From Histomonas meleagridis 2922-C6/04-290x (taxonomy: Eukaryota; Protista; Parabasalia), in the NCBI GenBank assembly GCA_020184695.1, contig JAANOX010000037.1, positions 336,267-400,266 of the forward strand: 64,000 nucleotides of DNA, in the 5' to 3' direction. Positions 6,538 to 64,000 of the stretch are shown piece by piece. Made by a program: the position numbers and the translations under genes. Under the pieces are notes generated by a model. The model did not search any database and was not told where the DNA came from. It was given only the letters and a program-made list of their open reading frames with translations. Within the stretch, counting starts at the first letter, position 1; each line of letters opens with the position of its first letter.

Positions 6538-6541
6538 TTCG

Positions 6542-18413: not shown

Positions 18414-18523
18414 TTATTTAAACAGACAAACTGTTTTTTTTGTATAGTTTATTACAATCCAACAGATTTCCGCGGTAAAAAACAAACGGTCCCTTATCGT
18501 ATAAACGGTCGTGCTCTGGCCAA

Positions 18524-19390: not shown

Positions 19391-22300
19391 CTACAAAAGC
19401 CATTTGTCATCATCCTCAAGGATCAGTGCTATGTGCGTCAAGTCTATATCATCGGATCTTGTGTCATATTCCGTCGACACATGTTTCGTTATACTTTTCA
19501 TCGCTTGTTTTCTTTTATATTTTTCTTCGTCATCTTGTTTCTGATGCCTCACGAGGAAAATTATGATTCCCGATAACAATAAGACAAATCCAATAGATCC
19601 GCAAATTAAGCCAATTAATATATTTTGATTGTTTTCTTTTTGTTGAACTGCAGATTTGAGCAAAATTGTGAAGAAGTTGGAATAGTAACTGTAGTGCGAT
19701 GTGTAATATAAAACAGAGTACGTGTAATATATGAAGTTGGTGGAAACATATGTATTCGTGGTGCTGACTGATGACTTAACAAATGTGACGGAAGAAAACG
19801 AGTCGACAAGAGTAATGGTGCGCGTAATCGAGACTGAATATATAATAACATATGAAAATGTTATTGTGGCATCAAATGGATATGAAGATGTAAATGAGTT
19901 CGACTGCGTGATTGCATTTGAACTCGTAAATGTATTACTTTTCGTAAATGAATTTGTTTTTGAAAATGTATTCGATTGCGAAAATGGATTCGACTTAGTG
20001 AAAGTATTCGATTCAGTAAATGTATTACTTTGTGTAAATGCGTTCGAAGGTGTGAACGTGTTGCTTTGCGAGAACGTGAGCGTTGGAGGGAGGCATTCAT
20101 CGATGACTGTTCCCTTTGAGACATTCAACGACCCAAATGTTGGGTTTTTGTACGAGTTATTCGTCATAACGCTTGTTGCAGGAACGCCAGAAAACGTTTT
20201 TTCTGTTATTGTTGGCTCATTTTCACCGAAGAAATAAATACACTTCAGATTTTCACATGAGGAGAATGCAGACTCGCCAATTTCAATTACATTTTCTCTG
20301 ATGATAACAGTTTCCAAATTCGCGCATGATAAAAATGCGTTTTTTCCAATTGTTGTAACTGTTACAGGAATTTCAAATCTATCATTTGTTCTTCCAATCG
20401 GATAACAAACAATTTCATTAATTTCTTTATCATAAAGAATTCCATCATTTTCATAATTTGCGTAATTTGAGTTATCTTTTGATACATTAATAATTTGAAG
20501 TTTACTGCATAAATTAAAAGCATTTGTATTAATATCATTTATTTTACTTGTAATTGTGATATTTACTAATGAAGTACACGAATGAAATGCATAGCTCAAT
20601 ATTTTGGTTACGCTTTCGCCAAAAACAATTGTTTTTAACAGAGAACATTCAGCTAAAAAATCATTTGGAATTACTTTTACATTTTCTCCGATAACAACTG
20701 TTTCTAAATTTTTACATCGATTAAATGCACTATTTCCAATTGTTTCAACCTTATTTGGAATTGTGAAATTTTTTAAGGAAGAACATGAACAAAAAGAAAA
20801 ATTTCCAATTTCTTTAACATTTTCTCCAATAATAACTGTTTCCAAATTATACAAATTATAAAAAGCATAATCACAAATTTCTTTAACATTTTCTCCGATA
20901 ATAACTTTTTTTAAATTATTACATGATGAAAATGCATAATTTCCAATTATTGTAACTGTTTCAGGAATTTCAAATATTTCATTTGTTTTCCCAACAGGAT
21001 AAATAATTAATTTGCTTATGTTTTTATTATAAAGAACTCCATCATATTCATAACTTGCAAAATTTAAATTCTCTATTGATACATTAAAAGCTTGAAAGTT
21101 AATACATACACCAAAAGCATCGACTTCAATTGTTTCAACATTACTTGGAATTGTGATACTTGTTAATGATTTACAAGAAGAAAATGCTTGACTTTCTATT
21201 ATTTTTAAATTATCTCCGAGAATAATTGTTTCTAAATTTTCACAAAAATAAAATGCTTCAACTCCAATTGTTGTTACACTTTCTCCAATAATAATTTTCA
21301 AATTATTACATGAATAAAATGCATTACGATCAATGTCTCTAACAGTATTCGGAATTTCGAATACTTCATTCGTTCTTCCAATAGGATAACATATAATTTG
21401 AATGAGTGAATGAGTATAAAGAATTCCATCATTTTCATAATTTGCATAATATGGATTTTGCTTTGAGACATTAATAACTTGAAGCTGAACGCATAAAAGA
21501 AAAGTATTCGCATATAACGTCTTCACACGACTTGGAATCGTGATATTTACTAATGACTTACATGAAGCAAATGCTTGAACTTGAATTGTTGTGACATTTT
21601 CTCCAATGATAATTGAATTGAGATTATTACAAGAAGAAAATGCATACGACATAATGTAATTGACTGCTTCGCCAATTTTAACTGTTTCTAAATTCCAGCC
21701 TATAAATGCTTTTTCAGTTATTTTAATAATACTGTCAATAACAACGTGTAATGCACTGCTTTGATATTGTTCTCTTGTATCAAAATCAGAATTATTGTTG
21801 ATATAAAAGATTTTATTGATTGGGTCAAATGATTCAAATGAATGAGCGATAAATATAATAAAAAAACATAGAATTGAAATTGATTTAATGTTTGAAATTT
21901 TACTTCGAAATATTTCTTTGTTAAAAAAGCAAAAAACAAAAAACAAAATTGAACTGGCTATAAGGCCTATGTGAATGTTCGGTAGTGAGTTGTTGATAAA
22001 ATTTGATGGGATAGAAAAAATTATTGATTTTTCTGTTGAAAGATATTTTTGCTTGGAACTGGACAAAGTGTTAATTAAACAAGAAAACATTGGTCTTAAG
22101 CCATCATTTATATTATTGGAATACTGATGATCAAAAGAATTATGGATGGACTTTTTGATACCGATGAAATTACATCCAGTGGAACACATAGCATCAACGC
22201 CTAAGCTTATGCGTTTATTTTTGTCATTAGTATGAACGTTATATTTCATTTTATTGCAATTTAAAAATGTCTGTATTTTGTGTTTGCATGCGTTTTTTCT

Positions 22301-22462
22301 GTACATCACATGTAAGATAAGGCACGTAATAAAAGTAAAAGATATTAAGTATGGGAATTTAATGATTTGTGCCCAATTTCGCATTTTGCAAAATTTTGTG
22401 TTGATGGAGCAAATATAATTCAGAGCTTTACAAATCCGGCCACAGTCTGACACGACATTCAA
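19391..22462 (-). CDS. BspA-like TpLRR surface protein (true start uncertain)
   Basis: Many TpLRR units (IGENVTTI..AF..C..L..ITIP), three DG.LY..YP.G.T..FEIP modules, an S/T-rich stalk and a C-terminal TM (ILIGLICGSIGFVLLLSGIIIFLV). Confidence 0.9.
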   Translation of the reverse strand: MNVVSDCGRICKALNYICSINTKFCKMRNWAQIIKFPYLISFTFITCLILHVMYRKNACKHKIQTFLNCNKMKYNVHTNDKNKRISLGVDAMCSTGCNFIGIKKSIHNSFDHQYSNNINDGLRPMFSCLINTLSSSKQKYLSTEKSIIFSIPSNFINNSLPNIHIGLIASSILFFVFCFFNKEIFRSKISNIKSISILCFFIIFIAHSFESFDPINKIFYINNNSDFDTREQYQSSALHVVIDSIIKITEKAFIGWNLETVKIGEAVNYIMSYAFSSCNNLNSIIIGENVTTIQVQAFASCKSLVNITIPSRVKTLYANTFLLCVQLQVINVSKQNPYYANYENDGILYTHSLIQIICYPIGRTNEVFEIPNTVRDIDRNAFYSCNNLKIIIGESVTTIGVEAFYFCENLETIILGDNLKIIESQAFSSCKSLTSITIPSNVETIEVDAFGVCINFQAFNVSIENLNFASYEYDGVLYNKNISKLIIYPVGKTNEIFEIPETVTIIGNYAFSSCNNLKKVIIGENVKEICDYAFYNLYNLETVIIGENVKEIGNFSFCSCSSLKNFTIPNKVETIGNSAFNRCKNLETVVIGENVKVIPNDFLAECSLLKTIVFGESVTKILSYAFHSCTSLVNITITSKINDINTNAFNLCSKLQIINVSKDNSNYANYENDGILYDKEINEIVCYPIGRTNDRFEIPVTVTTIGKNAFLSCANLETVIIRENVIEIGESAFSSCENLKCIYFFGENEPTITEKTFSGVPATSVMTNNSYKNPTFGSLNVSKGTVIDECLPPTLTFSQSNTFTPSNAFTQSNTFTESNTFTKSNPFSQSNTFSKTNSFTKSNTFTSSNAITQSNSFTSSYPFDATITFSYVIIYSVSITRTITLVDSFSSVTFVKSSVSTTNTYVSTNFIYYTYSVLYYTSHYSYYSNFFTILLKSAVQQKENNQNILIGLICGSIGFVLLLSGIIIFLVRHQKQDDEEKYKRKQAMKSITKHVSTEYDTRSDDIDLTHIALILEDDDKWLL
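19880..20077 (-). repeat. Coding 18-bp tandem repeat (about 11 x hexapeptide [T/A/S/P]F[T/S]xSN) forming the BspA stalk
   Basis: TFSQSN TFTPSN AFTQSN TFTESN TFTKSN PFSQSN TFSKTN SFTKSN TFTSSN AITQSN SFTSSY. Confidence 0.85.
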
Positions 22463-32139: not shown

Positions 32140-35100
32140 ATGTCTGATTCGAGTAGTTTCATCACTGAATCAGATGATAGTAAAAGTACATATCGAAAGG
32201 AGATTCCACAGCCTATCGAACAAAATATTGATGTACCAATTACACCAATAATGTCAACACAATTTCCACCATTTTCATATTTTTTTGTTGTTATTACTAA
32301 AGCAATTAATCTCCATGGGTGTTCCAAGCAAACGCTTTATTTATTAATTCGTACACATCCAAAAGTTAGGCCTATAATGACACCAAATGCTTGGTGTGAT
32401 GAATCAGAAGTCATTTTTAATTGCGGATATTCTCTAGATTTTACCAGTTTAAGCAATTTTTCACTTGGTGATTTTACGCCAGTTGTCGAATTATATTCTC
32501 GTTTATCAACAAAAAAGTCACAACTTATTGGAATCTCATTTCTTCCATTAAAAGTACTTAAAACAATTACTGTATATGACAAACCACTTACATTTATTTA
32601 TTATAACACGCCAATTGAATTGAAAGATGTTTCCACATTACGAACTATAGGCACAATATATTCCACAATAGCATTTGGTGAATATGAACATCAAAATCTT
32701 CTTGATCCTAATTCGCCAGCCTTTTCTAAGATTAATCTTTTTGATCACAAAATTATATCTCGCAATGAATCATCATCAGATTATTCTTCAAGTGAATATG
32801 ATAGCGATTATTCATACAGTGATTATAGTGATGATGAAGATTGGATATTAATTGCGAAGAAGAAAGGATGGTATAAACCAGGATCAAGTGGAAGATGGAA
32901 AGAACATGCATTATCTAAAGGATGGACAGCTCCGAATTTAACAAGTTTTTATACAGTTGGAATAGAATGTGATATCGAAGGAATAAATTCACGTGCGAAT
33001 AATTCGGTTCAAGTTGATTTAGACTTAAATGATATCAATGATTATTTAAATGAATTCGAAGATACTTCACAACAAATTGAAATAGTTAAAGAAGATATAA
33101 ATAATTTGTTTTCAAACCATTCATTACAAATTGAAGAACAAAATATTTTTTCGTCTGATTCACTTAAATCTAAAACTAAAAAGTTTTCGTTAAAGAAATT
33201 TATTATATTTTCTACTGAAAATGATAATGGGAAAAATGATAAAACATATTCTTTTAGTTCATACAATGAAATTAATATTATTAAAGATGAAAATAATCAT
33301 AAAAAAGAAGAAAACATTAAAATTTATTCAGTAAGTTCCGACAATAGAACAGAATTAAAAATATTAATTTCAAATGATGAAAATGAGATTTCAAATCATG
33401 AAGAAGATGATAATGATTCAAATACACTCGATGAAGTTTTAAGCATTGAAGAACTTAGTTTTTCTGATTCATTTACATTTGGCTTTAAGAAACAATTTCT
33501 TTCAAGTGATAAATCCGATTCTTCTTCAAAAGAAAATATTAGAAATAATTCAGAAAAGTCAAAGCAAAATAACAAAAAGTCTAAGTCGGAAAGTGATAGC
33601 GGAAGTGTTCTTGATATCACAAACATTGCGGAATTTGACTCTTCCGAAATTTCGATGCGAAATAAAACTTCGAAACATGATTCAACAATTGGCTCTAAAA
33701 ATGAAGAAGCGAAAAGTGATAAAAACAACGAAAAAACTGAATTAGAGAAAGTAAGTGACATCAGTTCATCGGAATTTACTAAAAGTCCCGATAAATCTTC
33801 AACGAAAAATAATACAATTCAAAATTCGGAAAGTATTAAATTATCTGTTACTTCGAATGCTGACAAAAGTATTAACAAAGAACTTTCAAATGATTCAAAC
33901 AATGATAAAGTAAATGAAAATAATAAAAATTCGGAAAGAATAAAATTATCGATAAGCAATGATAAAAATGAATTGTCAAATGATCCAATTAAATATGAAA
34001 ATAATAAAACTTCAGATGAAATAAAAATATCTGTTTCAACGGATAATGATAAAAATAATAAAAAAGAATTGTCAAATGATCCAATTAAATATGAAATCAG
34101 CAAAATAGAAAAAGAAAACCAAAAAGTTTCGGATATTTCTAAAATATCCACAGTTACCACAAGTAAAAGTAACAGTAAATCTTCGAATGATCCAATTAAA
34201 TATGAAATTAGTAAAATAGAAAAAGAAGATCACAAAGTTTCAGATGAAATAAAAATATCTGTCTCATTAGACAATGAAAACAGTAATAAAAAAGAATTGT
34301 CAAATGATCCAATTAAATATGAAATCAGTAAAATAGAAAAAGAAAACCAAAAAATTTCGGATATCTCCAAAATATCCACTGTTACCACAAGCAAAAGTAA
34401 CAGTAAATCATCGAATGATCCAATTAAATATGAAATCAGTAAAATAGAAAAAGAAAACCAAAAAATTTCGGATATCTCCAAAATATCCACTGTTACCACA
34501 AGTAAAAGTAACAGTAAATCTTCGAATGATCCAATTAAATATGAAATTAGTAAAATAGAAAACACAGAAAAAGAAAACCAAAAAAATACCGAAAATCAAC
34601 AAATTTCAGATCCAATCATAAATGGAACATTTGATAGTTATTTATCTGATAGTTTAAATGATATTTTAAGTATTTCATCCAAACACTCTAAAAATTCCGA
34701 TTCCAATTCATTCACTAATCAAAAAGAAAATGAAAATAGTAATTCGAGCATTTTAAATTCAAGAAAAACACTCAACAAAAGCAATAAAACAAATGAATCA
34801 TATGTAACTGAAATAAAGTCATTAAGTGAAGAAAGTAATAGTATTTCTTCATTCGAATCATCTATTAGTGGGAAAACTGATTTAGACTTTAATAAAATTA
34901 TACCAAACGAAAATGATAAGAAAAGAAAACAAAAATCAGAAAAACTTCGCAAAGAATTTAAATCGTTAAGTGACGAAATCCTAAAAATTTCATTGGAATC
35001 AGATAAAAATAACAAAACTTCAGAAAATAAAACACCAAATTTGTCAATAGACTCTTCTTCTGATATCAGTGTTTCAAGTGATTTCGCAGATGGAGAAATT

Positions 35101-35217
35101 AAGCCAATTGAGCCGCTGGATGACATAGATGAAATATCTTTGCACGCAATCAATTTGAGTAATATGAAGTCAAATTCAGAAAGTGAATCAGAATCTTATG
35201 ACCCAAATGTATTTTAG
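32140..35217 (+). CDS. Hypothetical protein: N-terminal C2-like domain, Trp-rich motif and long S/N/K/E-rich repeat tail
   Basis: 1025-aa ORF; YLLIRTHP...FTPVVELY...LIGISFLPL resembles a C2 fold; internal repeats are listed separately. Confidence 0.7.
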   Translation: MSDSSSFITESDDSKSTYRKEIPQPIEQNIDVPITPIMSTQFPPFSYFFVVITKAINLHGCSKQTLYLLIRTHPKVRPIMTPNAWCDESEVIFNCGYSLDFTSLSNFSLGDFTPVVELYSRLSTKKSQLIGISFLPLKVLKTITVYDKPLTFIYYNTPIELKDVSTLRTIGTIYSTIAFGEYEHQNLLDPNSPAFSKINLFDHKIISRNESSSDYSSSEYDSDYSYSDYSDDEDWILIAKKKGWYKPGSSGRWKEHALSKGWTAPNLTSFYTVGIECDIEGINSRANNSVQVDLDLNDINDYLNEFEDTSQQIEIVKEDINNLFSNHSLQIEEQNIFSSDSLKSKTKKFSLKKFIIFSTENDNGKNDKTYSFSSYNEINIIKDENNHKKEENIKIYSVSSDNRTELKILISNDENEISNHEEDDNDSNTLDEVLSIEELSFSDSFTFGFKKQFLSSDKSDSSSKENIRNNSEKSKQNNKKSKSESDSGSVLDITNIAEFDSSEISMRNKTSKHDSTIGSKNEEAKSDKNNEKTELEKVSDISSSEFTKSPDKSSTKNNTIQNSESIKLSVTSNADKSINKELSNDSNNDKVNENNKNSERIKLSISNDKNELSNDPIKYENNKTSDEIKISVSTDNDKNNKKELSNDPIKYEISKIEKENQKVSDISKISTVTTSKSNSKSSNDPIKYEISKIEKEDHKVSDEIKISVSLDNENSNKKELSNDPIKYEISKIEKENQKISDISKISTVTTSKSNSKSSNDPIKYEISKIEKENQKISDISKISTVTTSKSNSKSSNDPIKYEISKIENTEKENQKNTENQQISDPIINGTFDSYLSDSLNDILSISSKHSKNSDSNSFTNQKENENSNSSILNSRKTLNKSNKTNESYVTEIKSLSEESNSISSFESSISGKTDLDFNKIIPNENDKKRKQKSEKLRKEFKSLSDEILKISLESDKNNKTSENKTPNLSIDSSSDISVSSDFADGEIKPIEPLDDIDEISLHAINLSNMKSNSESESESYDPNVF
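33976..34580 (+). repeat. Coding tandem modules beginning SNDPIKYE (six units; 37-aa A type and 32-39-aa B type)
   Basis: Order B', A, B, A, A, partial; near-identical DNA in the A units (111 bp). Confidence 0.9.
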
Positions 35218-37262: not shown

Positions 37263-37302
37263 TGATAAATAACATTGATAACTTTCATTAAAATGATATG
37301 TA

Positions 37303-38575
37303 TAGGGGGTGGAAAAAGTCCGTTCGTCAGCTGATTTATATTAGATATTAATGAAATCAAATTATATAAATAAAATTTATAATAAATATATTATCATTAT
37401 TATGATAATACTTTTTTCCAAGTAAATATGATGCATGAAGTAAAACTACTTTTTTTCATGATACCCTCGAAAAAGAACGTTTAATCATTTAAATGTCAGT
37501 TCCAATTGAGGAATTACGTTCTGTTGTCCATTTTCTTTAGTTAGAATCAAATGAAAATCAAGACATATATAGGCGATTATGTGCTGTATATGGTGATAAT
37601 ATTATTACACTTCGAACAGTTCAGAAATGGACAAAAAAGATGAATGAACATACCTTCTCAATTTTCGAACAGAAAAAAACAGGGAGACCAAGAAGATCAG
37701 ATTTAGATCAAAGAATAACCAGTTTTATATTAAGTTATCCATATGCATCGACGAAGAAAAATTGCGAAGAATGTAGGCGCAGATCCAAAAAAACAGTGAA
37801 AAAAATATAATGATTAATATTTTAGGGATGAAAAAAGTTAACTTCAAATGGATCCCACATAAGTTGACTCCAGAAATTAAAGCCAAAAGAGCTGCCATTG
37901 CTTCTGAATTATTTGAATTCCATTCTAGTTCAAATGACTACAGACTAAGACACATATTGACGCAAGATGAAACCTGGATTTATTTTGTTAACGGGAGAAA
38001 CTCGATGTGGATTGAATCTGGAGTGCAAAAACCATACAAACCCAAACAACCTATTGCCTCCAAAAAAGTAATGATATCTGTTATATGGTCTATAACTGGT
38101 ATCAAATCAATAACAATGCTCCCGTTAGGCCAAAAATTTAATCGAATTTTTTTTCTGAAGTTGTACTTGGAGATTTGGCAAAAAGAATTTCAACGAAGGG
38201 ATATTTTTTGCATATGGATAACGTACGGCCTCATTTGGTTCATGAAAAATTGAATGAATCGGGGATTAAAAGACTTCCGCAACCCTCGTTTTCGCCAGAC
38301 CTCGCACATTCTGACTTTTTTCTGTTCGGATATCTAAAAAAAATGCTCGAATATGAGGAGTTTGAAAATGAAGATCAACTTTTTCAAAAGGTCGAAACAT
38401 TACTGTATAATATTCCTAAAGACATCTTCAAAGCCGTATATAATGAATGGATGAACAGACTTTTAATTACAATTGAAACTCAAGGTGAATACACATCATA
38501 ATAAATAAACAAAATTTCTTTTACTTTTTTATTCATTAAAAAAAAGGCTGACGAACGCACTTTTTCCACCCCCTA
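37303..38575 (+). mobile_element. Complete Tc1/mariner (mariner-like) DNA transposon, 1273 bp, decayed
   Basis: 29-bp TIRs TAGGGGGTGGAAAAAGT(C/G)CGTTCGTCAGC at 37303-37331 and 38547-38575 with one mismatch; TA on both sides (TATA makes the exact end ambiguous by 2 bp). Confidence 0.95.
37493..38501 (+). pseudogene. Mariner transposase pseudogene (DD31D)
   Basis: N-terminal HTH (LCAVYG...RTVQKW, GRPR), WIPHKLT, TQDETW, HMDNVRPH and FSPDLAHSDFFLF; TAG at codon 16 and frameshifts near 37760-37810 and 38155. Confidence 0.93.
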
Positions 38576-38782
38576 TATTATGTAGGATATCAAAGATTAC
38601 AGTCATTTTAAAAATATGAAATTACTAATTTGGAGAAATGAAATACTTAAAGCCTATTCTATTGTTATTAAGAGAATTGTTGAATGAAACCCATTGTGAT
38701 AAATGATTTATGTTGTTTGCCATTTGCTAGTAATAAATAGGAAAATAAGATATTAAATAAATAAAAATAAATAATGATGTTT

Positions 38783-40831: not shown

Positions 40832-42196
40832 TTATACATCAGAGATGTTCTTAGGCGTTTTTTGAAGATTCTTAGATACAACGATTATCAAAGCAATAAC
40901 AATTACTACTGCAGCCCCTACAGCGGCAGCAATAATCACAATATTGTTTTTGCTCTTTTCTTTATTTTCTTCATGACTTGGTTCGTCAGTTTTTCCTGGT
41001 TGTTTTGATTCAGGACTTTCAGTTTCTTTTTGATCAGTTTTTTCTGGTTGTTTTGATTCAGGACTTTCAGTTTCCTTTTGATCTGATTTTTCTGGTTTGT
41101 CAGGTTCAGGACTTTCAGTTTCCTTTTGATCTGATTTTTCTGGTTTGTCAGGTTCAGGACTTTCAGTTTCCTTATGATCTGGGTCATCTGGCACAAATTT
41201 TGAATCTCCTTCAAAAGTTCGATCTTCCTTGAATTCACCTAATACATCTTTATGAAGAGTGTTGATATCCAGCAAAGTACTAGTTTTTGATGTTGTTATT
41301 ATATTTATTTTTAATTTAGAATTTACCCATTTACTATTATCAAATGCAAATTTAATTTTAGGAGTATCTACAGAAGCAAAATAACCATCATTCATTAAAA
41401 CATCGAATTCATCAGGTTCTAAATAACTATAACAAAGTGTAGTGAAAGGATCTTCAATAAATATGTTTATTACAGAATTTTCTTTACAATTACTTGCTAA
41501 GGTTACTTTAATAACTCTATCCTCATATGGATTAAGAAGAATACCAACATCATCTTTATATTTAAAAGAATATTTTCTAACTCCATTACTATATTGATTC
41601 GCAATTTCATAATGATCTTCATTTATAATAATTTCAATCGGATTTGTAAAGATATATTGTCTTTTCGTTGTCACTACGTCTTTATTATCAGGTTCTCCAA
41701 TATAACGATTAGCTTTCACGTTCCCCTGTGTTCCAATTGCATAAATCTGATCTACCACAAAAGTACCACTAGTAACCGAAACAATATTTTTTAATGCAAT
41801 TACTGGAATTGTTTTAGATATGTCAGCATTTTTAATTAGCGTAGTAAAACCTAAATTGTAAATACCTAATTTTGGGATCGTAACTTTCGATAAATCAAAG
41901 GTAATGGGGTGGTCCATATCTTCCACATATATTACTGCTGACTCAATACCAGAAAGATCATTAGCAAGGTTACTTAATTCATTTGCACCTTTATAAAAAA
42001 TGATTGATTTGCTTTTGAAAATAATTGAATTGCCTTTATCACATTTTCTATCACTTGTTTTCCCCTTGCAATAAGATTCATGATGTTTCATGAAGTTATC
42101 TAGATGTGGAGGGATATATTTGGATTGTCCATAATAAAAAATCGCATGCTTGGGCTTCTTATCACATATGATTGAAGGAATGAATAGAAGAATCAT
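40832..42196 (-). CDS. Type I single-pass surface protein, uncharacterised family (tandem paralogue 2)
   Basis: MILLFIPSIICD leader, collinear similarity to paralogue 1, a repeat stalk, TM and tail ending ISDV. Confidence 0.8.
   Translation of the reverse strand: MILLFIPSIICDKKPKHAIFYYGQSKYIPPHLDNFMKHHESYCKGKTSDRKCDKGNSIIFKSKSIIFYKGANELSNLANDLSGIESAVIYVEDMDHPITFDLSKVTIPKLGIYNLGFTTLIKNADISKTIPVIALKNIVSVTSGTFVVDQIYAIGTQGNVKANRYIGEPDNKDVVTTKRQYIFTNPIEIIINEDHYEIANQYSNGVRKYSFKYKDDVGILLNPYEDRVIKVTLASNCKENSVINIFIEDPFTTLCYSYLEPDEFDVLMNDGYFASVDTPKIKFAFDNSKWVNSKLKINIITTSKTSTLLDINTLHKDVLGEFKEDRTFEGDSKFVPDDPDHKETESPEPDKPEKSDQKETESPEPDKPEKSDQKETESPESKQPEKTDQKETESPESKQPGKTDEPSHEENKEKSKNNIVIIAAAVGAAVVIVIALIIVVSKNLQKTPKNISDV
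40979..41170 (-). repeat. Coding 48-bp tandem repeat x4 (ETESPE[PD/SK].PEK[S/T]DQK)
   Basis: Two ETESPEPDKPEKSDQK and two ETESPESKQP units immediately before the TM. Confidence 0.9.
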
Positions 42197-50091: not shown

Positions 50092-50140
50092 AGAGGAAAT
50101 GATGTCAATTAAATAATTATTTTGGTTTAAGCTTTTGTAA

Positions 50141-52400
50141 ATGGAAAACAAATTAAAAATGTGAATCAGATTAATAAATGAAAAACAAATTAATAAAAGT
50201 GAAACAAATTAATAAAAATGTGAATCAGATTAATAAAAGTGAAACAAATTAATAAAAATGTGAATCAGATTAATAAATGAAAAACAAATTAATAAAAGTG
50301 AAACAAATTAATAAAAATGTGAATCAGATTAATAAAAGTGAAACAAATTAATAAAAGTGAAACAAATTAATAAAAGTGAATCAGATTAATAAAAGTGAAA
50401 CAAATTAATAAAAGTGAAACAAATTAATAAAAATGTGAATCAGATTAATAAAAGTGAAACAAATTAATAAAAGTGAAACAAATTAATAAAAGTGAATCAG
50501 ATTAATAAAAGTGAAACAAATTAATAAAAGTGAATCAGATTAATAAATGTGAAACAAATTAATAAAAGTGAAACAAATTAATAAAAATGTGAATCAGATT
50601 AATAAAAGTGAAACAAATTAATAAAAGTGAAACAAATTAATAAAAATGTGAATCAGATTAATAAAAGTGAAACAAATTAATAAAAGTGAAACAAATTAAT
50701 AAAAGTGAAACAAATTAATAAAAGTGAAACAAATTAATAAAAGTGAAACAAATTAATAAAAGTGAAACAAATTAATAAAAAGTGAAACAAATTAAAAAAA
50801 AAGTGAATCAGATTAATAAATGAAAAACAAATTAATAAAAGTGAAACAAATTAATAAAAATGTGAATCAGATTAATAAAAGTGAAACAAATTAATAAAAG
50901 TGAAACAAATTAATAAAAGTGAAACAAATTAATAAAAGTGAAACAAATTAATAAAAGTGAATCAGATTAATAAATGTGAAACAAATTAATAAAAGTGAAA
51001 CAAATTAATAAAAATGTGAATCAGATTAATAAAAAGTGAAACAAATTAATAAAAAGTGAAACAAATTAATAAAAAATGAAACAAAATAATAAAAAGTGAA
51101 ACAAATTAATAAAAAGAAAAAAAAAAAAAAAAAAGTGAAACAAATTAATAAAAGTGAAACAAATTAATAAAAGTGAAACAAATTAATAAAAGTGAAACAA
51201 ATTAATAAAAGTGAAACAAATTAATAAAAGTGAAACAAATTAATAAAAGTGAATCAGATTAATAAATGTGAAACAAATTAATAAAAGTGAAACAAATTAA
51301 TAAAAAAATGTGAATCAGATTAATAAAAAGTGAAACAAATTAATAAAAAGTGAAACAAATTAATAAAAAGTGAAACAAATTAATAAAAAAATGTGAATCA
51401 GATTAATAAAAAGTGAAACAAATTAATAAAAGTGAAACAAATTAATAAAAAGTGAATCAGATTAATAAATGTGAAACAAATTAATAAAAAGTGAAACAAA
51501 TTAATAAAAAAATGTGAATCAGATTAATAAAAAGTGAAACAAATTAATAAAAAGTGAAACAAATTAATAAAAGTGAAACAAAATAAAAAAAAGAGAAACA
51601 AATTAATAAAAGTGAAACAAATTAAAAAAAGTGAAACAAATTAATAAAAGTGAAACAAATTAATAAAAGTGAAACAAATTAATAAAAGTGAAACAAATTA
51701 ATAAAAGTGAAACAAATTAATAAAAGTGAATCAGATTAATAAATGTGAAACAAATTAATAAAAGTGAAACAAATTAATAAAAATGTGAATCAGATTAATA
51801 AAAGTGAAACAAATTAATAAAAGTGAAACAAATTAATAAAAGTGAAACAAATTAATAAAAATGTGAATCAGATTAATAAAAGTGAAACAAATTAATAAAA
51901 GTGAAACAAATTAATAAAAGTGAATCAGATTAATAAATGTGAAACAAATTAATAAAAGTGAAACAAATTAATAAAAATGTGAATCAGATTAATAAAAGTG
52001 AAACAAATTAATAAAAGTGAAACAAATTAATAAAAGTGAAACAAATTAATAAAAGTGAAACAAATTAATAAAAGTGAAACAAATTAATAAAAGTGAAACA
52101 AATTAATAAAAGTGAAACAAATTAATAAAAGTGAAACAAATTAATAAAAGTGAAACAAATTAATAAAAGTGAAACAAATTAATAAAAATGTGAATCAGAT
52201 TAATAAATGAAAAACAAATTAATAAAAGTGAAACAAATTAATAAAAATGTGAATCAGATTAATAAAAGTGAAACAAATTAATAAAAGTGAAACAAATTAA
52301 TAAAAGTGAAACAAATTAATAAAAGTGAAACAAATTAAAAATGTGAATCAGATTAATAAATGTGAAACAAATTAATAAAAAAGTGAAACAATTTACTTAT
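50141..52400. repeat. ~2.25 kb non-coding satellite of a 19-bp monomer (GTGAAACAAATTAATAAAA) with interspersed variant GTGAATCAGATTAATAAA(A); about 115-120 units
   Basis: Period 19 is read directly (e.g. 52021-52180); strongly A-rich on the plus strand; degenerate monomers continue to about 52590. Confidence 0.97.
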
Positions 52401-55454: not shown

Positions 55455-56627
55455 TTATCTTCTGGAGTTAATGGTAAGCTTATCCAATATAGACCAGAAT
55501 GAAACATAGTTAAGAGCGCATGTCCATGAAAGAAGAGTATCCTCATCATTTTCATATATAACATGTTCTGTTTCTTTGCTTCTCCTCTTTTGAAGGTCTT
55601 TAGTGAATGTAAATCCTATAGATCCACCATTGATCTTTTTGATTATCATATGAGGAGGCTCTTTCTTACTTGCAGGAACAAACGATGTATTTGACCCATC
55701 AAGTTCAATCTCGCCAATGAGCTCGGATTTACTTTCGTCTTTGAAGTACTTAAGGCTGAAGTGGTCGATGATGTAAAATCTTTTTGATTTGGCCTTGAAT
55801 ACTCCACCACTTTCTTTCTTTAAAAGACCTGATTTGTTGTAATTAGGCTCTTCTAAAGACACAGAAAACTCGAAAAAGATGGGAATTGGGTTTTCTTTCA
55901 ATTGATAATAAATTTTCTCTTTATAAGCATCTCCAACTTTAACTGTCTTGACAAAAGAAAGGAACTCACCGAGTGGTAAAACTTCGGTTTTTCTGTAAAA
56001 AATAGAGAATGCAATACAAGCAACAGTAACTTGTGCAATTTCTTTGCGACTTAATGGTAAATATGGATTTGCTTCCGAATACACAGAAGCAAACGTATTG
56101 AATAATGTCGATAGATGTTGTTGATTGTTTGGGAAAGCAATTCTTGATAATAATATTCGAGCAGCTTCTGGAATTGTTAAAAATTCAAGATTGACTGCTC
56201 CAAAATAATAATAGAGAATTGAATGCGCATTCGAAGGATCCGAAAATACGTACTGCGTAAGTGATTTAGGATATATGTTTGAACAATACATTAAAAATGG
56301 ACCAAGGTTAGACTCCTCATTTAGTTGCCTCATTGTTGATCGTATCTCTGAAATTGCTTGGTTTGGTGATTTATTAAATTTATTTGCAAAATCAGGTGGA
56401 TACTCAAACTTTTTATGATCAAAAGGATAATCAATTTCTTGTAGCAGTGGTGCCTTTCCAATCCAAGTTGTAGTTTGTGGGTTTTCACCATATTTTTGAG
56501 ATAAAGCTGCAGCACTTTGCATATTGATTTCCTCAAAAGTTTCGTGAGAAATGATTGGCCCACTTTCAGGAATTATTTGTTCCGAAGGCGAGTTTGTATC
56601 AAGAACTTGGTTGGTGCTTGCTGACAT
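55455..56627 (-). CDS. Cytohesin-like Sec7 plus PH domain protein with a degenerate Sec7
   Basis: FANKFNKSPNQAI, Sec7-like helices, then a PH domain (KSGLLKKESGG.FK..SKRFYII...LKYFK...LLSWTCAL). Confidence 0.7.
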   Translation of the reverse strand: MSASTNQVLDTNSPSEQIIPESGPIISHETFEEINMQSAAALSQKYGENPQTTTWIGKAPLLQEIDYPFDHKKFEYPPDFANKFNKSPNQAISEIRSTMRQLNEESNLGPFLMYCSNIYPKSLTQYVFSDPSNAHSILYYYFGAVNLEFLTIPEAARILLSRIAFPNNQQHLSTLFNTFASVYSEANPYLPLSRKEIAQVTVACIAFSIFYRKTEVLPLGEFLSFVKTVKVGDAYKEKIYYQLKENPIPIFFEFSVSLEEPNYNKSGLLKKESGGVFKAKSKRFYIIDHFSLKYFKDESKSELIGEIELDGSNTSFVPASKKEPPHMIIKKINGGSIGFTFTKDLQKRRSKETEHVIYENDEDTLLSWTCALNYVSFWSILDKLTINSRR

Positions 56628-57349: not shown

Positions 57350-60300
57350 TTAATATTTTGCATCCGAGCTTAAGCTTTCGTCATCACTTTCCGAGCTACT
57401 ACTTAACGTGAACAAATCGTCTTCGGAGTTACTCTCATTTTCTTTTCTAATTCTTTTATTTACTTCCTCCAGTATCAATTGGGCGTCTTTTTTACTGTAT
57501 ACTTTTAATATATCTGCGTTTTCCACCAAAATATTTAAATCGTTTTTCAAAGATATTTCGGTGGTGTACCAATGATTCTTTAATCTATCTCTGAACAACG
57601 TTAAATCCATTGGTTGTTTTGCGTTTCCTATTAAAATTCTTTGAGATTTTCCATCTCTCACATATATCATATTTGTTATTTCTTTTTTTCCACTATTAAT
57701 CAAATCATTAATATAAACATATAACTCATCCATTAACATATTTAACTTAACATCTATTTCAACAGTTTCATCTTCATTAATTATTTCCCATGGAACTAAA
57801 TAACAAATTGAATTATCATCTATAAACTTTACTTCGATTGATGACCACGGATCATTTTTATAATTCTTATTAATACTAATAATAATTGCTTCGAATTCTT
57901 TTGTGTTTCCATTATCTTCTTGAAATTCCGCTTTAATATGATCATTAACTTTAAGTGTTTCACAATATTTAATACTTTTATTATATATTTCTTCTCGTAT
58001 TATAAATGGTGGAGTTTCTGGTATTGGATAAGCTATAGTTGCTTCGAAGTCTTTAAACCTTAAAAATAATATTAAATGTGTTATATAAAATTGGATGTTA
58101 ATGATAGTGGCAATTGTTACATCAGGTAAATTACGTTGGATTTCATATGGCGTTCGATAATGCATATAATTACAGATTTGTTTATATTCTTGATGACCTT
58201 TCCGTACATATATTATCCGTTCGCCAATTTGTGGTATATATGTATGACGAATTCGAACACTATTAAATACCCAATTTGGAAGTATTTCATTAATAACTGT
58301 TTCGTTTTCATTAGATGATGTCGATGACGATGCTGTCGAACTATAATAATATTCTTCTTCTGTACTATGTAATGATTGTTCTTCTGAACTTTGCGTATAT
58401 TCAAAATCACTTGATACAATTGATGATGTACTTGATGATTCATACATAGAAATAGTATCAGATGTATCAGAACTAATAAATTTGGATTTCCGCGTTTGTT
58501 TTTTGGCGTTTTTCTTCTTCTTTGGTTTGTATCCCATGACAAAATCAGATGATTCATCAGATGATTCAACTTTCTTCTTCTTCTTGTTCTTAGGCTTAGG
58601 TGGAGGTGTCGGATTAGTTTTCTTTTTTCGTTTTGGCTTATACCCAATTACAAAATCAGATGATTCATCAGATGATTCAACTTTCTTCTTCTTTTTCTTA
58701 TTTTCTTTTTTAATGTCGTCGATAATAAAATCAGATTTTATAGTTTCAACGAAATCTTCTTCAATGAATTCATCATCATCATCTTCATATGTATTATTTC
58801 TTTTACTTTTCTTATTAGAACCTAAATCATCATCAATGAAATCGTTGAGATCATCATCGTCATCCTTAAATAACTTTGACGAATTTTTTTTTGTTTTTCT
58901 TTTCTTAGTTTTCTTCTTTTTCTTATTCTGAGGATGCTGTTGATATTGTGATAAGTTTTCATCATTTTCTTTCTCTTCGTTCTCTTCATTCTCATTAAAG
59001 AATTCTTCATCTTCGTTATTAGGTTTTAATAATATATATTCACTAATTTCATTTGTAATTCTATCTTCTTCTTCGATAACATTATTAGGAATAATTTTTT
59101 GCTTAATATCAATTCGAATATTAGTTAAATCAAATCGTTTTGGTTGTGGATTTAATGGATTCCCAATTTTATCAACAATTTGACAATAACTCGATGGTTC
59201 TTCACCTTCTTCAAATAGTTCTGTTTCGAAGAATTGTTCCATATAAGGGATTTGTTCTTGTTTGATTTTGTCATTCCGTAAGCCAAACATTGTTATACCG
59301 CCATTACTATCTGCTGCAAATATATATTGTCCATCACGTGACCATGTGACTTCAACAATATGGTACTCTTCATAAGGTAATAATACATTGATAAGATCTC
59401 CTGTTATTATGTCCCATAATGATGCACGACCGTTACGCGTTGTCACAATTATAATGTTTGGAATTTGAGGATGTGGTCGAATTATTGTTGGATGATCTGT
59501 AAGTTCAGGATGTGATATAATGATTTTGTTGATAAATGTTTGCGTTTCCCATACTAGAATACAATCTGATGATAATCCGATTATACAACTTTCATCACAA
59601 TTAAATGAAGCATTACATACTCGAGCTTTGACCCCGCGAGATGTTTTGGCCGAAAGAAGTTTAGGATCAGACCAATTCCCATTTTTATATTGCCAAAATT
59701 TTATGTTTCGTTCTTTTTGTGAAAATGATATAATTCGTTGACATGAAATCTGACTAAAAAAAACAAAATCTGGGAGACGCGAATGTCCTTTGAGAATTAA
59801 TACTTCATGTGTTATAAGTGATGCTACTTGAACAATATTTGGCTCCCCTGAACAAACAATAAATTCACCGCCTGGACTAAAGCTAAGCCATGCAAACCCT
59901 TTTTTGTTTTTGGAATAAAAAGAAAATAATTCATTCCCTTCAGAAAGTGCGTCGGCAACTTTCCAAACCGTTACACATCCTTCCTCACAGGCTGCCCCAA
60001 GATAACGGCCGCAAGGCGAAAACTTCAATGAGTGAACTTCACCGTTTTTCCGAAGCCGATTTAATAAAGTGCCTTTTTTTAGATCAACAATACAGATACA
60101 ATGGTCATGTGAAGATGAAGCAAAGTATTGGTTTGATGGATGAATTGAAATATCAGTGATAACATTTTCATGAATTTTTAATGTTTTTAAGAGAATTAAT
60201 TCAGGTATTTTCCAAATCTTAAGCTTGAAGTCATCAGAACCTGAGATTAGGATTTGAGATGTGAAATCAATTGCAATACAATATATATCATCAAAATGTC

Positions 60301-60676
60301 CAACCACTCTTGTATAAGGCCCAAATTTTTTAATAGGTAAAATTGGTTCCCCAATGTTATAGAATAAGCCGGTTGTGTTACTTATTGATTTTTTGTTTTC
60401 TTGTGTTGGATTTGATAATAGCGATGATTGATTTGATTGTTCACAAAAGTTTGAAATAAGCCTTATGAGCTGATCATCTGGAACTCCTTTGAAAGAGTTT
60501 TTGAGTTGAGCAAAAGAACTATTGTGAGAAAATAATCCTGATGGAAAAAGATTCCTTTGTTCGCATTCGTGAATAAAAGAGTCACCAATTGATGGAAATT
60601 CAAGTTTTAAGAAGTTTGCTAGAATGAAGAGTAGCTCACTCCTTTGGTTGGAATTCAAAATGTGAATTGGCTCCAA
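57350..60676 (-). CDS. BRWD/PHIP-like WD40 protein with a degenerate bromodomain; start unresolved (possibly ATG at 60716)
   Basis: SELLFILANFL N-terminal motif, WD40 blades, YIPQIGERIIY.RKGHQEY (PHIP-like) and PMDL..F.DRL.N.WY bromodomain remnant. Confidence 0.78.
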   Translation of the reverse strand: MEPIHILNSNQRSELLFILANFLKLEFPSIGDSFIHECEQRNLFPSGLFSHNSSFAQLKNSFKGVPDDQLIRLISNFCEQSNQSSLLSNPTQENKKSISNTTGLFYNIGEPILPIKKFGPYTRVVGHFDDIYCIAIDFTSQILISGSDDFKLKIWKIPELILLKTLKIHENVITDISIHPSNQYFASSSHDHCICIVDLKKGTLLNRLRKNGEVHSLKFSPCGRYLGAACEEGCVTVWKVADALSEGNELFSFYSKNKKGFAWLSFSPGGEFIVCSGEPNIVQVASLITHEVLILKGHSRLPDFVFFSQISCQRIISFSQKERNIKFWQYKNGNWSDPKLLSAKTSRGVKARVCNASFNCDESCIIGLSSDCILVWETQTFINKIIISHPELTDHPTIIRPHPQIPNIIIVTTRNGRASLWDIITGDLINVLLPYEEYHIVEVTWSRDGQYIFAADSNGGITMFGLRNDKIKQEQIPYMEQFFETELFEEGEEPSSYCQIVDKIGNPLNPQPKRFDLTNIRIDIKQKIIPNNVIEEEDRITNEISEYILLKPNNEDEEFFNENEENEEKENDENLSQYQQHPQNKKKKKTKKRKTKKNSSKLFKDDDDDLNDFIDDDLGSNKKSKRNNTYEDDDDEFIEEDFVETIKSDFIIDDIKKENKKKKKKVESSDESSDFVIGYKPKRKKKTNPTPPPKPKNKKKKKVESSDESSDFVMGYKPKKKKNAKKQTRKSKFISSDTSDTISMYESSSTSSIVSSDFEYTQSSEEQSLHSTEEEYYYSSTASSSTSSNENETVINEILPNWVFNSVRIRHTYIPQIGERIIYVRKGHQEYKQICNYMHYRTPYEIQRNLPDVTIATIINIQFYITHLILFLRFKDFEATIAYPIPETPPFIIREEIYNKSIKYCETLKVNDHIKAEFQEDNGNTKEFEAIIISINKNYKNDPWSSIEVKFIDDNSICYLVPWEIINEDETVEIDVKLNMLMDELYVYINDLINSGKKEITNMIYVRDGKSQRILIGNAKQPMDLTLFRDRLKNHWYTTEISLKNDLNILVENADILKVYSKKDAQLILEEVNKRIRKENESNSEDDLFTLSSSSESDDESLSSDAKY

Positions 60677-60899
60677 AATCCTATTTCAAAACGTGCCTGT
60701 TCTTCAAAAGTGACATCACCTGGGGCTGCCCATTTTTTTGTCAGATATTCGCTGTTTATGATGTTAGTACGTTAAAACGTCACTTTTTAATACTTCAGAT
60801 TAAAAATATCACAAACTCATCCCAAAAATCGTATGACCAAATATCAATTCAAAAGTCATTTCAACGAAACGAGAGTGGTTGCTGGTAGGTATATAATGC

Positions 60900-60976
60900 G
60901 GTCGGGAATGATCACGAGGACCCTAGGGGCCCCGCCGGGGGCGGGGCCCCTAGGGTCCTCGTGATCATTCCCGACC
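60900..60976. repeat. Perfect 37-bp inverted repeat with a 3-nt loop (GGG)
   Basis: GGTCGGGAATGATCACGAGGACCCTAGGGGCCCCGCC (60900-60936) is the exact reverse complement of 60940-60976; about 70% GC. Confidence 0.99.
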
Positions 60977-61359
60977 TTAAGTTTTCACTGGGGGGATTTC
61001 CGGGGTCTTCGGCCTCCGGAGGTGCCCTTCGAACCTCCGAGGCCTCAGACCTCCAACTCTCGAGTGTGCTCGCCCAGCTCGCCACAAAAATCAAAATGAA
61101 TTTTGTGAGCCATACAATTCGTCTGAAAATTTGAATGCGCATTCAATTTTGAGAGAACGCGAAACTTTTTGATAGGAACGATAGCACTTTTAGCACCACT
61201 TTTCGCATAAACCTATCAAAAACCTCACATAACCAACACGAATTGTCCTCGGTTATCTTTGGTCGGACATTTATTTTATTCAATTTATCTTTGCCAGGAG
61301 GTTAATAGTCAAAAAACGACGGTTATTGTTTGGTCTCATGGCAAACTTTATTTTTATAA

Positions 61360-61701
61360 ATGCTTAAACCTGTAACTAAAACGTATTTTTGTACTTCACA
61401 AAAAGAAAACCGTTTTCCGCCTGAATTTGTGGATTCTCAAAATCCTAGATATATAGTAGTACAACAATGTAAGTGTAAATTTAAGGAATATTTAGTATCT
61501 GATGTTTCAATGCATGCTGATTTCATTGAACGTGATCATTATGAAGATTATTTTTGTATTTATACGAATGAAAATAAAACTAAATATAAGAAATATGAAT
61601 ATAAAAGTAGAAAACCAAATTTTAAAATATGGTTTAAAGAAATGAATGGTAAAGAAATTGAACCAGAATATTTTATGTTAGAATTATTATTAATTTATTA
61701 A
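61360..61701 (+). CDS. Small beta-rich protein, putative minor capsid (penton)-like protein
   Basis: Alternating beta-strand pattern ending FKIWFKEMNGKEIEPEYFMLELLLIY, reminiscent of Polinton penton C-termini; by recollection only, not searched. Confidence 0.45.
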   Translation: MLKPVTKTYFCTSQKENRFPPEFVDSQNPRYIVVQQCKCKFKEYLVSDVSMHADFIERDHYEDYFCIYTNENKTKYKKYEYKSRKPNFKIWFKEMNGKEIEPEYFMLELLLIY

Positions 61702-61721
61702 ATAAAAATCATTTTTTATCA

Positions 61722-63659
61722 ATGTTTAGTATTGAGAATGCTACGAAAGGTATAAAAACTAATGTTATTGCTGCTCCTGAAATTATTGACCAAGATGACT
61801 TACAAAAAGTTTTAGAAAATTATTCTACAAATGATCAAATAACAGAAAAACTTAATACTATAACTTCGATTACAATCCCACAATTATATTATAATAAATC
61901 GCAATCAGATGAAAAATATTCTACAAAAAGTCATACTCATAATACAATAAATAATGATCTAACAGTAAATGGGAATGTACAAGTTACTTCATTAAATGGT
62001 TTTCAATTATCAACAGCAAAAGGTGGTAAATGGGATACAAAATTATATGTTCCAGCTATTATCACATTAAAAGAAGATGGTGTTGTAGAAGTTGGACAAT
62101 ATATTGATATGCATTATAATGCAGATTACGATACAGATAATACATGGAGAATAACTGCTAATACTAATTCATTAGATTTTAAATCAAAAACTGGAACATT
62201 ATTAAGTTTTGGTAGTAATGGCAATATTCAATGTGCATCTATAAATAATGTAGATACATCTGAAATATCTTTAAATGATCATAATCATGATGAGATTTAT
62301 GCTAAAAAAGATCATGAACATGTAAACTATGCTTCATCAGATCATACTCATAGTTATACTGATTTAAATGATAAATCACAGTCATTTCCACCTTCAGATC
62401 ATACTCATAGTTATAATGATTTAACTGATAAACCTGAAACATTTCCACCTTCAGAACATACCCATAGTTATAATGATTTAACTGATAAACCTGAAAAATT
62501 TCACCCTCAGAACATACACATGAAGAGTATGCTTCAAAAAGATCATAATCATGATACAAAAATATGCTGCAAACAAATCATACACATAGTTATAATGATT
62601 TAACAGATATTCCTACAGGTTCAAATACAGAAGATATTCATTGTTCAACAATTAATGGTTTTGCTCTAAATTCGGGACCTTCAGCTTCAAATTTAGATAT
62701 TAGTGTTCCTTCAATTGCAGTTATTAAAAACGATGGTGTTTTAGAAACAGGTCCTTACATAGATATGCATACTAGTGATGGATATGAAAATGATTATAGT
62801 TGGAGAATACAATGTATTGAAGATGATATAGCATTTAAACCAAAACAAGGAAATGGTTTTCATTACTCCTCATCTTTTGATGCAATAGGTTGTAATATAA
62901 TAGTTTGTAGTGAAATTATGTACTCTGTAAAAACTAATGGCATTGTTAATACAGGAAATATAAAATCCGATACTGGACAATTCACTAGTTTAGAATCTAC
63001 TAAATTAACTTTATTTCACAGTATAATTGAAGAATCAGGTAATACATATCAATTATTATGGAGAATTTATGGATGTACACCTACTGCAGATAAAAAATAT
63101 GGAAGATTATATTTTGAATCTGTAACACAAAAGAAACAAAATGATGGTACCTTTTCTGATACATATAGTAAAATATATTATATTGCAACTACATTTAATA
63201 CATTCGAAGGAACTGGAGGTCTTGCACAAATAAATACAACTATTATTCATAATGCTCCTGTTTCAGAAGACTTAACACAATTATCAAATTGGTTCACCTG
63301 TATTTTTAACAGGTAATGTTTATGCTATAACTAATGAAGGTAAATATGTTACAAATACTTCATCAACTGATTGTATTCCATCAGTTAAAACAACAGGTAC
63401 ATATAAAAAATATTTAGGTATTTGTGTAGCTAAACATGAAAATGGTTATAAAGCTTCAATAGGTGATGTTATTAGAAGAGAAGTAAAAATTTTACAAGAT
63501 ACTATTGATTTTGCTACACATGGAGATTTTTATTTTAGAGTAAATAATACTGCAGATTATGAAATTGGTGATGTAGTATTATTTGATGGTAATAAATCAT
63601 CAGATGATTTAGTAATAACTACTAAATATAGATGTGAGCTTAGAAAGAACAACAGATGA
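61722..63659 (+). pseudogene. Frameshifted phage-tail-fibre-like gene (about 645 codons when restored; possibly intact if the indels are assembly errors)
   Basis: ORFs 61722-62603, 62564-63316 and an unlisted frame (about 63287-63659, IGSPVFLTGNVY...TDCIPSVK...DFATHGDFYFRV...EIGDVVLFDG) join after removing one -1 and four +1 indels. Confidence 0.75.
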
Positions 63660-63924
63660 TCAATTTAAATATAAACGATTTGACGATTATAAGCAATTTG
63701 AATATAATTTTATCAAACTTTTTATCAAAACTGAAAAAATTACACTCATTAATGGAAAAATTGGAAGAAAAACAATTCCAGAGCATTACGAATATTATAT
63801 CAGAACGATTATCAAAAAATTGAATGAGATGTTTGCACGCAAAGTTTTTGAAGCTAAAAAAAAGCCTCTCAAATTTAATAAATATTGTGAAGAATTAAGG
63901 AATTATAATATTTATGAATTCTAA
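63634..63924 (+). CDS. Hypothetical ORF (GTG start), basic/aromatic, unknown
   Basis: 96-codon open frame overlapping the fibre stop; no motif recognised. Confidence 0.2.
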   Translation: MSLERTTDDQFKYKRFDDYKQFEYNFIKLFIKTEKITLINGKIGRKTIPEHYEYYIRTIIKKLNEMFARKVFEAKKKPLKFNKYCEELRNYNIYEF

Positions 63925-64000
63925 GAATTCACCTTATATTAACACAGGTTTTCAAATCTCGTTCGAAAAACAAATATTTACTTTGAGTAACTATTGACTT

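Follow-up and report, generated by a model that had tools for sequence, protein, structure and literature searches.

Does a flawless, G+C-rich hairpin in A+T-rich parasite DNA mark a replication origin or resolution site, and to what kind of genetic unit does it belong? This question is raised by a 64,000-nucleotide (nt) stretch of the Histomonas meleagridis genome (the window, which forms the last 64 kb of the 400-kb contig JAANOX010000037.1 in assembly GCA_020184695.1), in which two 37-nt arms, at 60900-60936 and 60940-60976, are 100% complementary to each other and are separated only by the 3-nt loop GGG. It is close to certain that this hairpin, here called HP1, belongs to the terminal inverted repeat (TIR) of a Maverick/Polinton-type element. 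HP1 is a subterminal palindrome whose place is conserved and whose sequence is variable; it is strictly Watson-Crick symmetric, and its loop is invertible. Judged from these sequence patterns, its most likely role would be to help the element ends be copied or recognised. The reading that we prefer, with moderate confidence, is that HP1 may be a structure-maintained terminal cis element, and not a parvovirus-like or closed-hairpin telomere.

A G+C-rich hairpin with a simple predicted fold

The original prediction described a perfect 37-bp stem with a GGG loop and 70% G+C in DNA of roughly 30% G+C, and both descriptions hold. The G+C fraction of the arm is 0.70, versus 0.18-0.37 in the surrounding DNA (2-kb windows). 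The arm was found once in the window, and matches were seen in 0 of 100 dinucleotide shuffles. Symmetry ends after 37 bp. When folded as single-stranded DNA, the segment 60884-60990 is predicted to form a single unbranched hairpin (-54 kcal/mol, z = -14), and a longer segment, 60880-61100, has a z-score of -11.

Three palindromes nested in the stem (TGATCA, CCCTAGGG and GGGGCCCC) had been proposed to permit branched alternative folds. All three are present in the window's HP1, but only CCCTAGGG is retained by every related copy; TGATCA is missing from the end designated L004_L, and GGGGCCCC is missing from L008_a (ends are named after the loci, such as L004, at which copies of the element lie). 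We rejected a branched, T-shaped fold, since neither the minimum-energy nor the centroid structure contains one and the inner palindromes lack conservation. No Rfam family matched the hairpin region at gathering thresholds, and in E-value mode there were only generic microRNA-precursor-like matches, far below threshold, which reflect nothing but hairpin shape.

HP1 recurs at the ends of a multicopy element

The H. meleagridis genome (43 Mb) is available as two assemblies of the same strain lineage, with public raw reads. Both assemblies derive from Nanopore and Illumina data (PMC8529796). Loci reached through host genes and paralogues of the window's genes carry the hairpin in both assemblies, so that it is not single-copy. 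Our comparison covers 9 element ends at ~7 independent loci in the two assemblies, which include four distinct perfect HP1 variants.

DNA from position 60884 to the end of the contig recurs at many loci with 75-96% identity, and at least 40 annotated copies of the element's capsid gene are present over the two assemblies. The part of the element within the window is 88-92% identical to copies at L002, L003 and L004. The L004 copy (7222-19719; 12,498 bp), from the second assembly, is the one complete copy available. Its TIRs (7222-7705 and 19235-19719) are ~485 bp long and 98% complementary, and a 6-bp target-site duplication (TSD), AAAACG, borders it at each end. L004 carries HP1 at its left and its right end, in each case 16 nt from the TSD.

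All ends share one plan. From outside to inside, host DNA is followed by a 16-nt tail, HP1, a 9-nt spacer, a second hairpin (HP2), and two smaller palindromes (HP3 and HP4), and the host flank outside the tail is different at each locus. Because this plan is common to the copies, we place the start of the window's element at 60884 and the inner limit of its TIR at ~61360. HP1 is the first and largest of the four consecutive palindromes, which together occupy the G+C-rich outer part of the TIR (~235-270 nt). The outermost 200 nt of the ends contain 60-67% G+C, and the element as a whole contains 26.5%. The apical part of HP2 is variable or deleted in some copies; z-scores for most copies run from -2.6 to -4.8, and L008_a has no predicted stable fold at this position.

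A truncation or deletion boundary recurs just outside HP4, at a position equivalent to ~61118-61129 of the window. Three copies (the left side of L005 at 7671, L009 at 2536 and L010 at 7477) start at this boundary and are preceded by unrelated DNA, and a deletion in L002 begins at it (L002 9657). The shared boundary suggests that the G+C-rich terminal module behaves as a separable unit, with its inner edge abutting HP4.

The hairpin does not appear to lead a life apart from the element. Within 260 kb, the hairpin base occurs 17 times, counted by strand, always in this same terminal context, and no solo HP1 was found. We accordingly rejected an independent foldback element or miniature inverted-repeat transposable element nested in the TIR, as no solo copies with duplications of their own occur in this 260-kb sample. 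A subterminal hairpin of the Helitron or IS200-IS605 type was also rejected, because the element has TIRs and a 6-bp duplication, and an HUH protein was not found. Scanning metagenome contigs with a pattern for the terminal motif gave 29 matches, all of them in unrelated G+C-rich, bacterial-type chance contexts.

The element in the window is cut at position 64000, the end of the contig and ~3 kb past the hairpin, probably because the repeat broke the assembly. A contig break inside a repeat at so short a distance might raise the suspicion of an assembly or long-read fold-back artefact. However, the same architecture recurs in two independent assemblies, at several loci that differ in their flanks, and each variant is perfectly paired. 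This recurrence excludes a fold-back artefact, in agreement with the original prediction, and we give an assembly error of any such kind practically no weight.

Mirrored substitutions and loop inversion

HP1 occupies the same slot in the 9 ends. Five of these (the window, L003_R, L004_L, L004_R and L008_a) carry a long-type HP1 in four distinct sequences, each of them paired at 37/37 positions. Among the long-type copies 7 of the 37 pairs vary, and all seven are altered on both sides; one-sided changes and G-T pairs are both absent. When the partner arm was slid by 1-3 columns as a control, pairing fell to 35-53%. The TIR just inside HP1 is 11-14% diverged in the same comparisons, and independent drift of the arms would therefore have given several one-sided mismatches.

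The loop also varies. In the outside-to-inside direction, the window has a GGG loop; L003_R, L004_L and L004_R have CCC, and L008_a has TCC. The stems of the window and L004_R differ at one mirrored pair, and all three loop bases are complemented between them. Given that only one stem pair differs, a single inversion event explains these two loops far better than three point changes. The flip/flop copies that the original prediction anticipated, with the loop reading CCC in the same orientation, thus exist in form, albeit in a small sample.

Other copies have a different palindrome or a damaged one in this position. A short-type palindrome of 48 nt shares the base and the slot of HP1, and is near-perfect at L008_b and decayed at L002_L. 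Among degraded copies, L005_R has collapsed to a 7-bp stem, L009_b has an asymmetric deletion of the tip, and L007/L011 is cut exactly at the loop. Such palindrome-centred deletions imply that remaining perfect is not the default fate of a copy. A mirrored 2-nt difference separates L003_R from L004_L, which represent an orthologous end in the two assemblies. We do not take it as a change observed in real time, since polishing with paralogous reads could produce such differences.

The hairpin might be a functionless by-product, in which an ancestral quasi-palindrome in the TIR was perfected by template switching during host replication and hitch-hikes with the element. In a single event, template switching of this kind (quasi-palindrome mutagenesis) yields mirrored changes of several bases and inverts loops. 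In keeping with such an origin, all HP1 changes are strictly Watson-Crick, old copies show palindrome-centred deletions and collapses, and copies that lack the entire G+C-rich module persist. However, subfamilies with TIRs that differ by 11-25% keep the position, the base and the 16-nt tail, one slot holds two different types of palindrome, and three more palindromes follow in a G+C-rich island of a 26%-GC element. Moreover, long perfect palindromes are prone to deletion, yet perfect stems persist in the youngest-looking copies, which suggests selection at the level of the element. We regard a by-product as possible, but unlikely.

An RNA-level role, with HP1 transcribed as a source of small RNAs, a terminator or a regulatory stem-loop, would draw on the fact that a perfect 37-bp stem is a good substrate for small-RNA processing; small RNAs are reported to map to Mavericks in Trichomonas vaginalis (PMC7845603). 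Pairs of the G-U type, though, are absent from the seven covarying pairs, the structure is identical on both strands, and HP1, at the outermost margin of the element, precedes the first gene by ~380 nt, in a region where no Rfam family reaches threshold. We consider an RNA-level role very unlikely, and infer that HP1 is a cis-acting DNA structure rather than an RNA or protein-coding feature.

Genes and classification of the element

The capsid gene lies 2-4 kb from one element end. It is split in many copies, including L004, where it is in two pieces, and intact in some (539-541 amino acids (aa)). The 539-aa protein P0141 has 607 relatives in a protein library clustered at 50%, most of which come from metagenome sources. 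An AlphaFold model of P0141 made with 46 relatives (predicted local distance difference test (pLDDT) 91.6, predicted template modelling score (pTM) 0.90) matches double-jelly-roll major capsid proteins with a Foldseek probability of 1.00; the matches include proteins of grouper iridovirus (SGIV), PBCV-1, Sputnik virophage and mavirus, as well as adintovirus-type proteins. A scan of IMG/VR with a narrowed capsid alignment returned no relatives. One capsid relative is found in Tritrichomonas foetus (L006, MLAK01000041.1), on a contig that shows neither a TIR nor a G+C-rich hairpin; this contig is uninformative and could be incomplete. Between the first open reading frame (ORF) and the capsid gene there is an A+T-rich imperfect palindrome of ~90-130 nt (L003 19271-19363; L004 8663-8799).

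The longer copies (L007/L011, L009 and L010) contain an additional module at a common junction, and this module carries a long polymerase gene. In L007 (16396-17886) the gene matches the protein-primed family-B polymerase family PF03175 (E=1.2e-25) and consists of two overlapping ORFs. The L011 locus, from the other assembly, is orthologous to L007 and contributes no new ends. In the window copy, the end of the contig cuts off this part of the element. Most copies examined are without the polymerase gene, and a profile scan of the ORFs in short copies detected no recognisable replication gene. We ruled out the idea that short copies are "deletion derivatives" of long ones, given that they contain no trace of the polymerase gene. 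A mariner-like transposase fragment lies just upstream of the polymerase gene in L007 (12627-13346), and is absent from the otherwise collinear L010.

Because TIRs, a 6-bp TSD, a capsid gene and a polymerase gene occur together, the element is a Maverick/Polinton-type endogenous virus-like element. The original prediction expected the hairpin to be linked to viral genes, and such genes are present in the form of the double-jelly-roll capsid, the protein-primed polymerase and a fibre-like protein.

The fibre-like gene of the window differs from an intact 643-aa ORF in L004 by about three frame changes and two in-frame stops. Two H. meleagridis proteins with a tail-fibre annotation are the nearest relatives of this fibre-like ORF, and an exact-protein look-up with the window's ORF gave no identical record. 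The corresponding region of L002 contains ~2.3 kb of extra DNA, with a winged helix-turn-helix ORF (11429-12452; HTH_24, E=6e-7), and this insert is absent from the window copy.

A family of 400-aa proteins, to which the ORF at the contig end corresponds, is suggested by its sequence to be a putative integrase. Among Pfam families, rve ranks first for 3 of the 5 members (E=0.012-0.025; 15 bits versus a cut-off of 32.6). When the family was compared with a genuine rve ORF, hhalign gave a probability of 1.9%, and the alignment spans the core motifs. A Walker A motif in L004:13056-13856 stands alone among signs of a packaging ATPase, a maturation protease or a penton protein. Sequence searches of Pfam, PHROGs, NCBIfam and the PDB gave nothing for most element ORFs, and no hit to any of these three functions. 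To the right of the hairpin in the window, no ORF matches a Pfam family, except for one weak, below-cutoff match to DUF6834_C.

A second transposon family, ~1.7 kb in length with 61-nt inverted ends, resides within some of these loci (L003 4941-6666; L010 about 6250-7450). It encodes an rve integrase (E=1.7e-13 in L010) and has a perfect 19-bp, G+C-rich subterminal hairpin of its own (L003 5080-5121). It may be a candidate for the IS481EU type, which has been described for parabasalids (PMC10045372).

How the hairpin might act

The original prediction saw in HP1 a replication origin or a resolution site, with a free linear form of the element that would have hairpin ends and would be copied by rolling-hairpin or hairpin-primed synthesis, yielding flip and flop forms. 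Several observations are compatible with such a snap-back origin or telomere-resolution site. Complementary loops in the same orientation (GGG versus CCC) exist, the arms are always perfectly mirrored, as if one arm templates the other, and one degraded copy (L007/L011) ends exactly at the loop. In addition, a preprint on Halocafeteria seosinensis proposes hairpin priming for terminal palindromes (bioRxiv 10.64898/2026.07.28.741278). The flip/flop result, however, does not single out rolling-hairpin replication, because intrastrand template switching also yields loop inversion and mirrored substitutions. Other features oppose it. HP1 is indeed in the end region of the element, but it is not at the terminus: it lies 16 nt inboard, and because the conserved tail is itself bounded by the TSD, the integrated unit has open ends beyond HP1. 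The symmetry stops at 37 bp. No HUH/Rep nuclease was found in the ORFs scanned from the window, L002, L003, L004, L007 and L010, and no telomere resolvase or protelomerase was detected in any scanned element ORF; the replication gene that relatives do possess is the protein-primed polymerase. Finally, one loop is of the G type and three to five are of the C type, and both L004 ends are alike, whereas 1:1 assortment would be expected, although the sample is too small for this ratio to decide. We judge rolling-hairpin or hairpin-primed copying to be distinctly unlikely.

The 16-nt tail bounded by the TSD, its terminal reiteration and the polymerase gene point instead to protein-primed replication from open ends. 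Short terminal reiterations let protein-primed polymerases slide or jump back after initiation. In the mechanism that we propose, the family-B polymerase would initiate replication at the 16-nt tail, where the GGTA GGTA reiteration lies, and HP1 would fold when the element end is in single-stranded form, as could happen on the strand that protein-primed synthesis displaces. The folded end could then aid recognition or copying, and might be bound by the integrase-like protein. Its symmetry would be renewed when one arm is re-copied from the other, via snap-back or template switching on the folded strand, and the same process of re-copying might occasionally invert the loop.

Several points weigh against HP1 being a maintained terminal cis element of this sort. 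The function that we infer for it is drawn from conservation alone, and the mirrored changes and loop inversion could arise in host replication without any role for the element. The sample is small (9 ends at ~7 loci, with four perfect variants), and polishing with reads from paralogous copies may have affected loop calls and variants in a repeated palindrome. Three copies without the entire G+C-rich module still persist in the genome. With regard to the proteins, the shorter copies, including the complete L004, have unrelated filler at the junction and no trace of the polymerase, and a terminal-protein domain was not identified. The match that suggests an integrase falls short of the Pfam threshold, and AlphaFold, given only 2 sequences for the integrase-like homologue P0290, produced a model with a pLDDT of 34.

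A bolder version of the preferred reading would be a hybrid of protein priming and a snap-back hairpin, in which the hairpin is regenerated from one arm in each round and its loop flips. We think this version quite improbable. If it is true, it would be a mode of end replication not known to have been described for polintoviruses, and the four-palindrome, G+C-rich module could be viewed as a separable "telomere cassette", which would explain the boundary at ~61118-61129.

Features of the window

Features of the element and its adjoining host gene are listed in Table 1.

Table 1. Coordinates of the element end and adjoining features in the window
Feature	Position	Strand	Basis and remarks
Host WD40-repeat protein gene	57350..60676	-	Outside the element; start codon ~207 bp from element end
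Left part of the Maverick/Polinton-like element	60884..64000	+	Alignment to L004, L002 and L003; cut by contig end
TIR	60884..61360	+	Alignment to copies; L004 TIRs ~485 bp
16-nt terminal tail	60884..60899	+	Tandem GGTA GGTA, then an A+T-rich stretch; nearly invariant among copies
HP1	60900..60976	.	Perfect 37-bp stem, 3-nt loop (GGG in window)
HP2, long imperfect G+C-rich hairpin	60986..61080	.	Outer stem plus inner hairpin at ~61003-61052
HP3, small A+T-rich palindrome	61084..61106	.	~10-bp stem, 3-nt loop, one mismatch in window copy
HP4 palindrome	61127..61150	.	13-nt arms, 92% complementary
Fibre-like gene with H-x-H repeats	61360..63316	+	Resembles phage tail-fibre families; broken in window copy
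Start of integrase-like gene	63634..64000	+	N-terminal residues match L002:14528-15730; cut by contig end

Farther to the left of the hairpin, a host gene for a Sec7-PH protein is found at 55455-56627. A tandem array of ~2.3 kb (50121-52400) comprises more than 100 copies of A+T-rich units of 19-21 nt, and the 2-kb window at the array has 18% G+C and strong skews. A mariner-like transposon of ~1.3 kb (37301-38577) has 31-nt inverted ends that are 97% complementary, as well as a match to Transposase_1 in a reading frame that is in pieces. The host ORF at 19391-22462 (- strand) has internal repeats and encodes a BspA-type leucine-rich-repeat protein (LRR_5, E=1.5e-86). Two further host ORFs, at 32140-35217 (+ strand) and 40832-42196 (- strand), contain coding repeats of 111-117 nt and 48 nt, respectively, and match no Pfam family.

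Significance

Replication and integration of Mavericks/Polintons have been deduced almost wholly from gene content, and their cis-acting end signals are not known to have been defined. The present case provides a conserved, structure-maintained subterminal hairpin beside a terminal reiteration. Its features can be counted (perfection of the stem, orientation of the loop, distance from the duplication) and could be surveyed across thousands of trichomonad Mavericks. Such a survey could show whether terminal palindromes are general in this class of viruses, as the Halocafeteria preprint suggests. The analysis also documents a Maverick-like family in H. meleagridis, a parasite of poultry whose genome paper reported almost no interspersed repeats: the figure given is only 0.23%, and Mavericks are not mentioned (PMC8529796).

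Comparison with known systems

The ends of the Histomonas element recall the inverted terminal repeats (ITRs) of parvoviruses, including adeno-associated virus, in that G+C-rich, self-complementary ends occur with two loop orientations and arms that are kept complementary. Parvoviral hairpins, however, are at the extreme terminus of a single-stranded genome, are nicked by an HUH-type Rep protein and are T- or Y-shaped, whereas the Histomonas hairpin is simple, subterminal and part of a double-stranded integrating element in which a Rep-like gene was not found. We therefore rejected a parvovirus-type ITR: the outermost sequence is a 16-nt tail bounded by host DNA and the duplication, and an HUH gene was not found. 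A covalently closed hairpin telomere, such as those of poxviruses, chloroviruses and N15-type replicons, was also rejected, as neither a resolvase nor a protelomerase was found and the symmetry stops after 37 bp.

In the linear replicons of Streptomyces, which use terminal proteins, palindromes packed at the end fold when that end is single-stranded. The Histomonas element resembles these telomeres in its TIRs, in having several palindromes packed into the first few hundred nt, and in the protein-primed synthesis of ends that we propose. This likeness is a functional analogy, and no homology is implied; the Streptomyces examples are bacterial replicons whose terminal protein and polymerase are unrelated.

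Among the closest known systems are the Maverick/Polinton elements of parabasalids, such as TvMav of T. vaginalis. The Histomonas element agrees with the capsid group "Metamonada" described from parabasalids (PMC10120064), and shares with these elements a parabasalid host, a length in the range of 10-28 kb, a double-jelly-roll capsid, a protein-primed polymerase, long TIRs and a 6-bp duplication. Unlike the Histomonas element, Trichomonas Mavericks have not been linked to subterminal palindromes within TIRs in any mention that we found in the literature on them.

The closest described case is that of a preprint from July 2026, which reports, for endogenous virophages and polinton-like viruses of H. 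seosinensis, palindromes (52 nt long in one subtype) that lie inside the TIRs and beside the duplications; they are mostly in elements without a protein-primed polymerase, and hairpin-primed replication is proposed for them as an untested model (bioRxiv 10.64898/2026.07.28.741278). As in Halocafeteria, the Histomonas palindrome is tens of nt in length, lies within the TIR next to a duplication, and is present at both ends of a capsid-encoding element of a protist, and in both cases a role in replication is only proposed. The two differ in that the Halocafeteria elements with palindromes mainly have replication genes other than the protein-primed family-B polymerase, whereas long copies of the Histomonas element carry that polymerase. 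The Histomonas palindrome is also longer, at 77 nt, is G+C-rich in an A+T-rich element, has a 16-nt tail outside it and is accompanied by three further palindromes. Moreover, mirrored substitutions and both loop orientations are seen directly in Histomonas, and the host lineage differs. What the Histomonas element adds to the Halocafeteria case is thus a new host lineage, a protein-primed polymerase in relatives, the 16-nt tail, the module of four palindromes, and covariation together with inversion of the loop.

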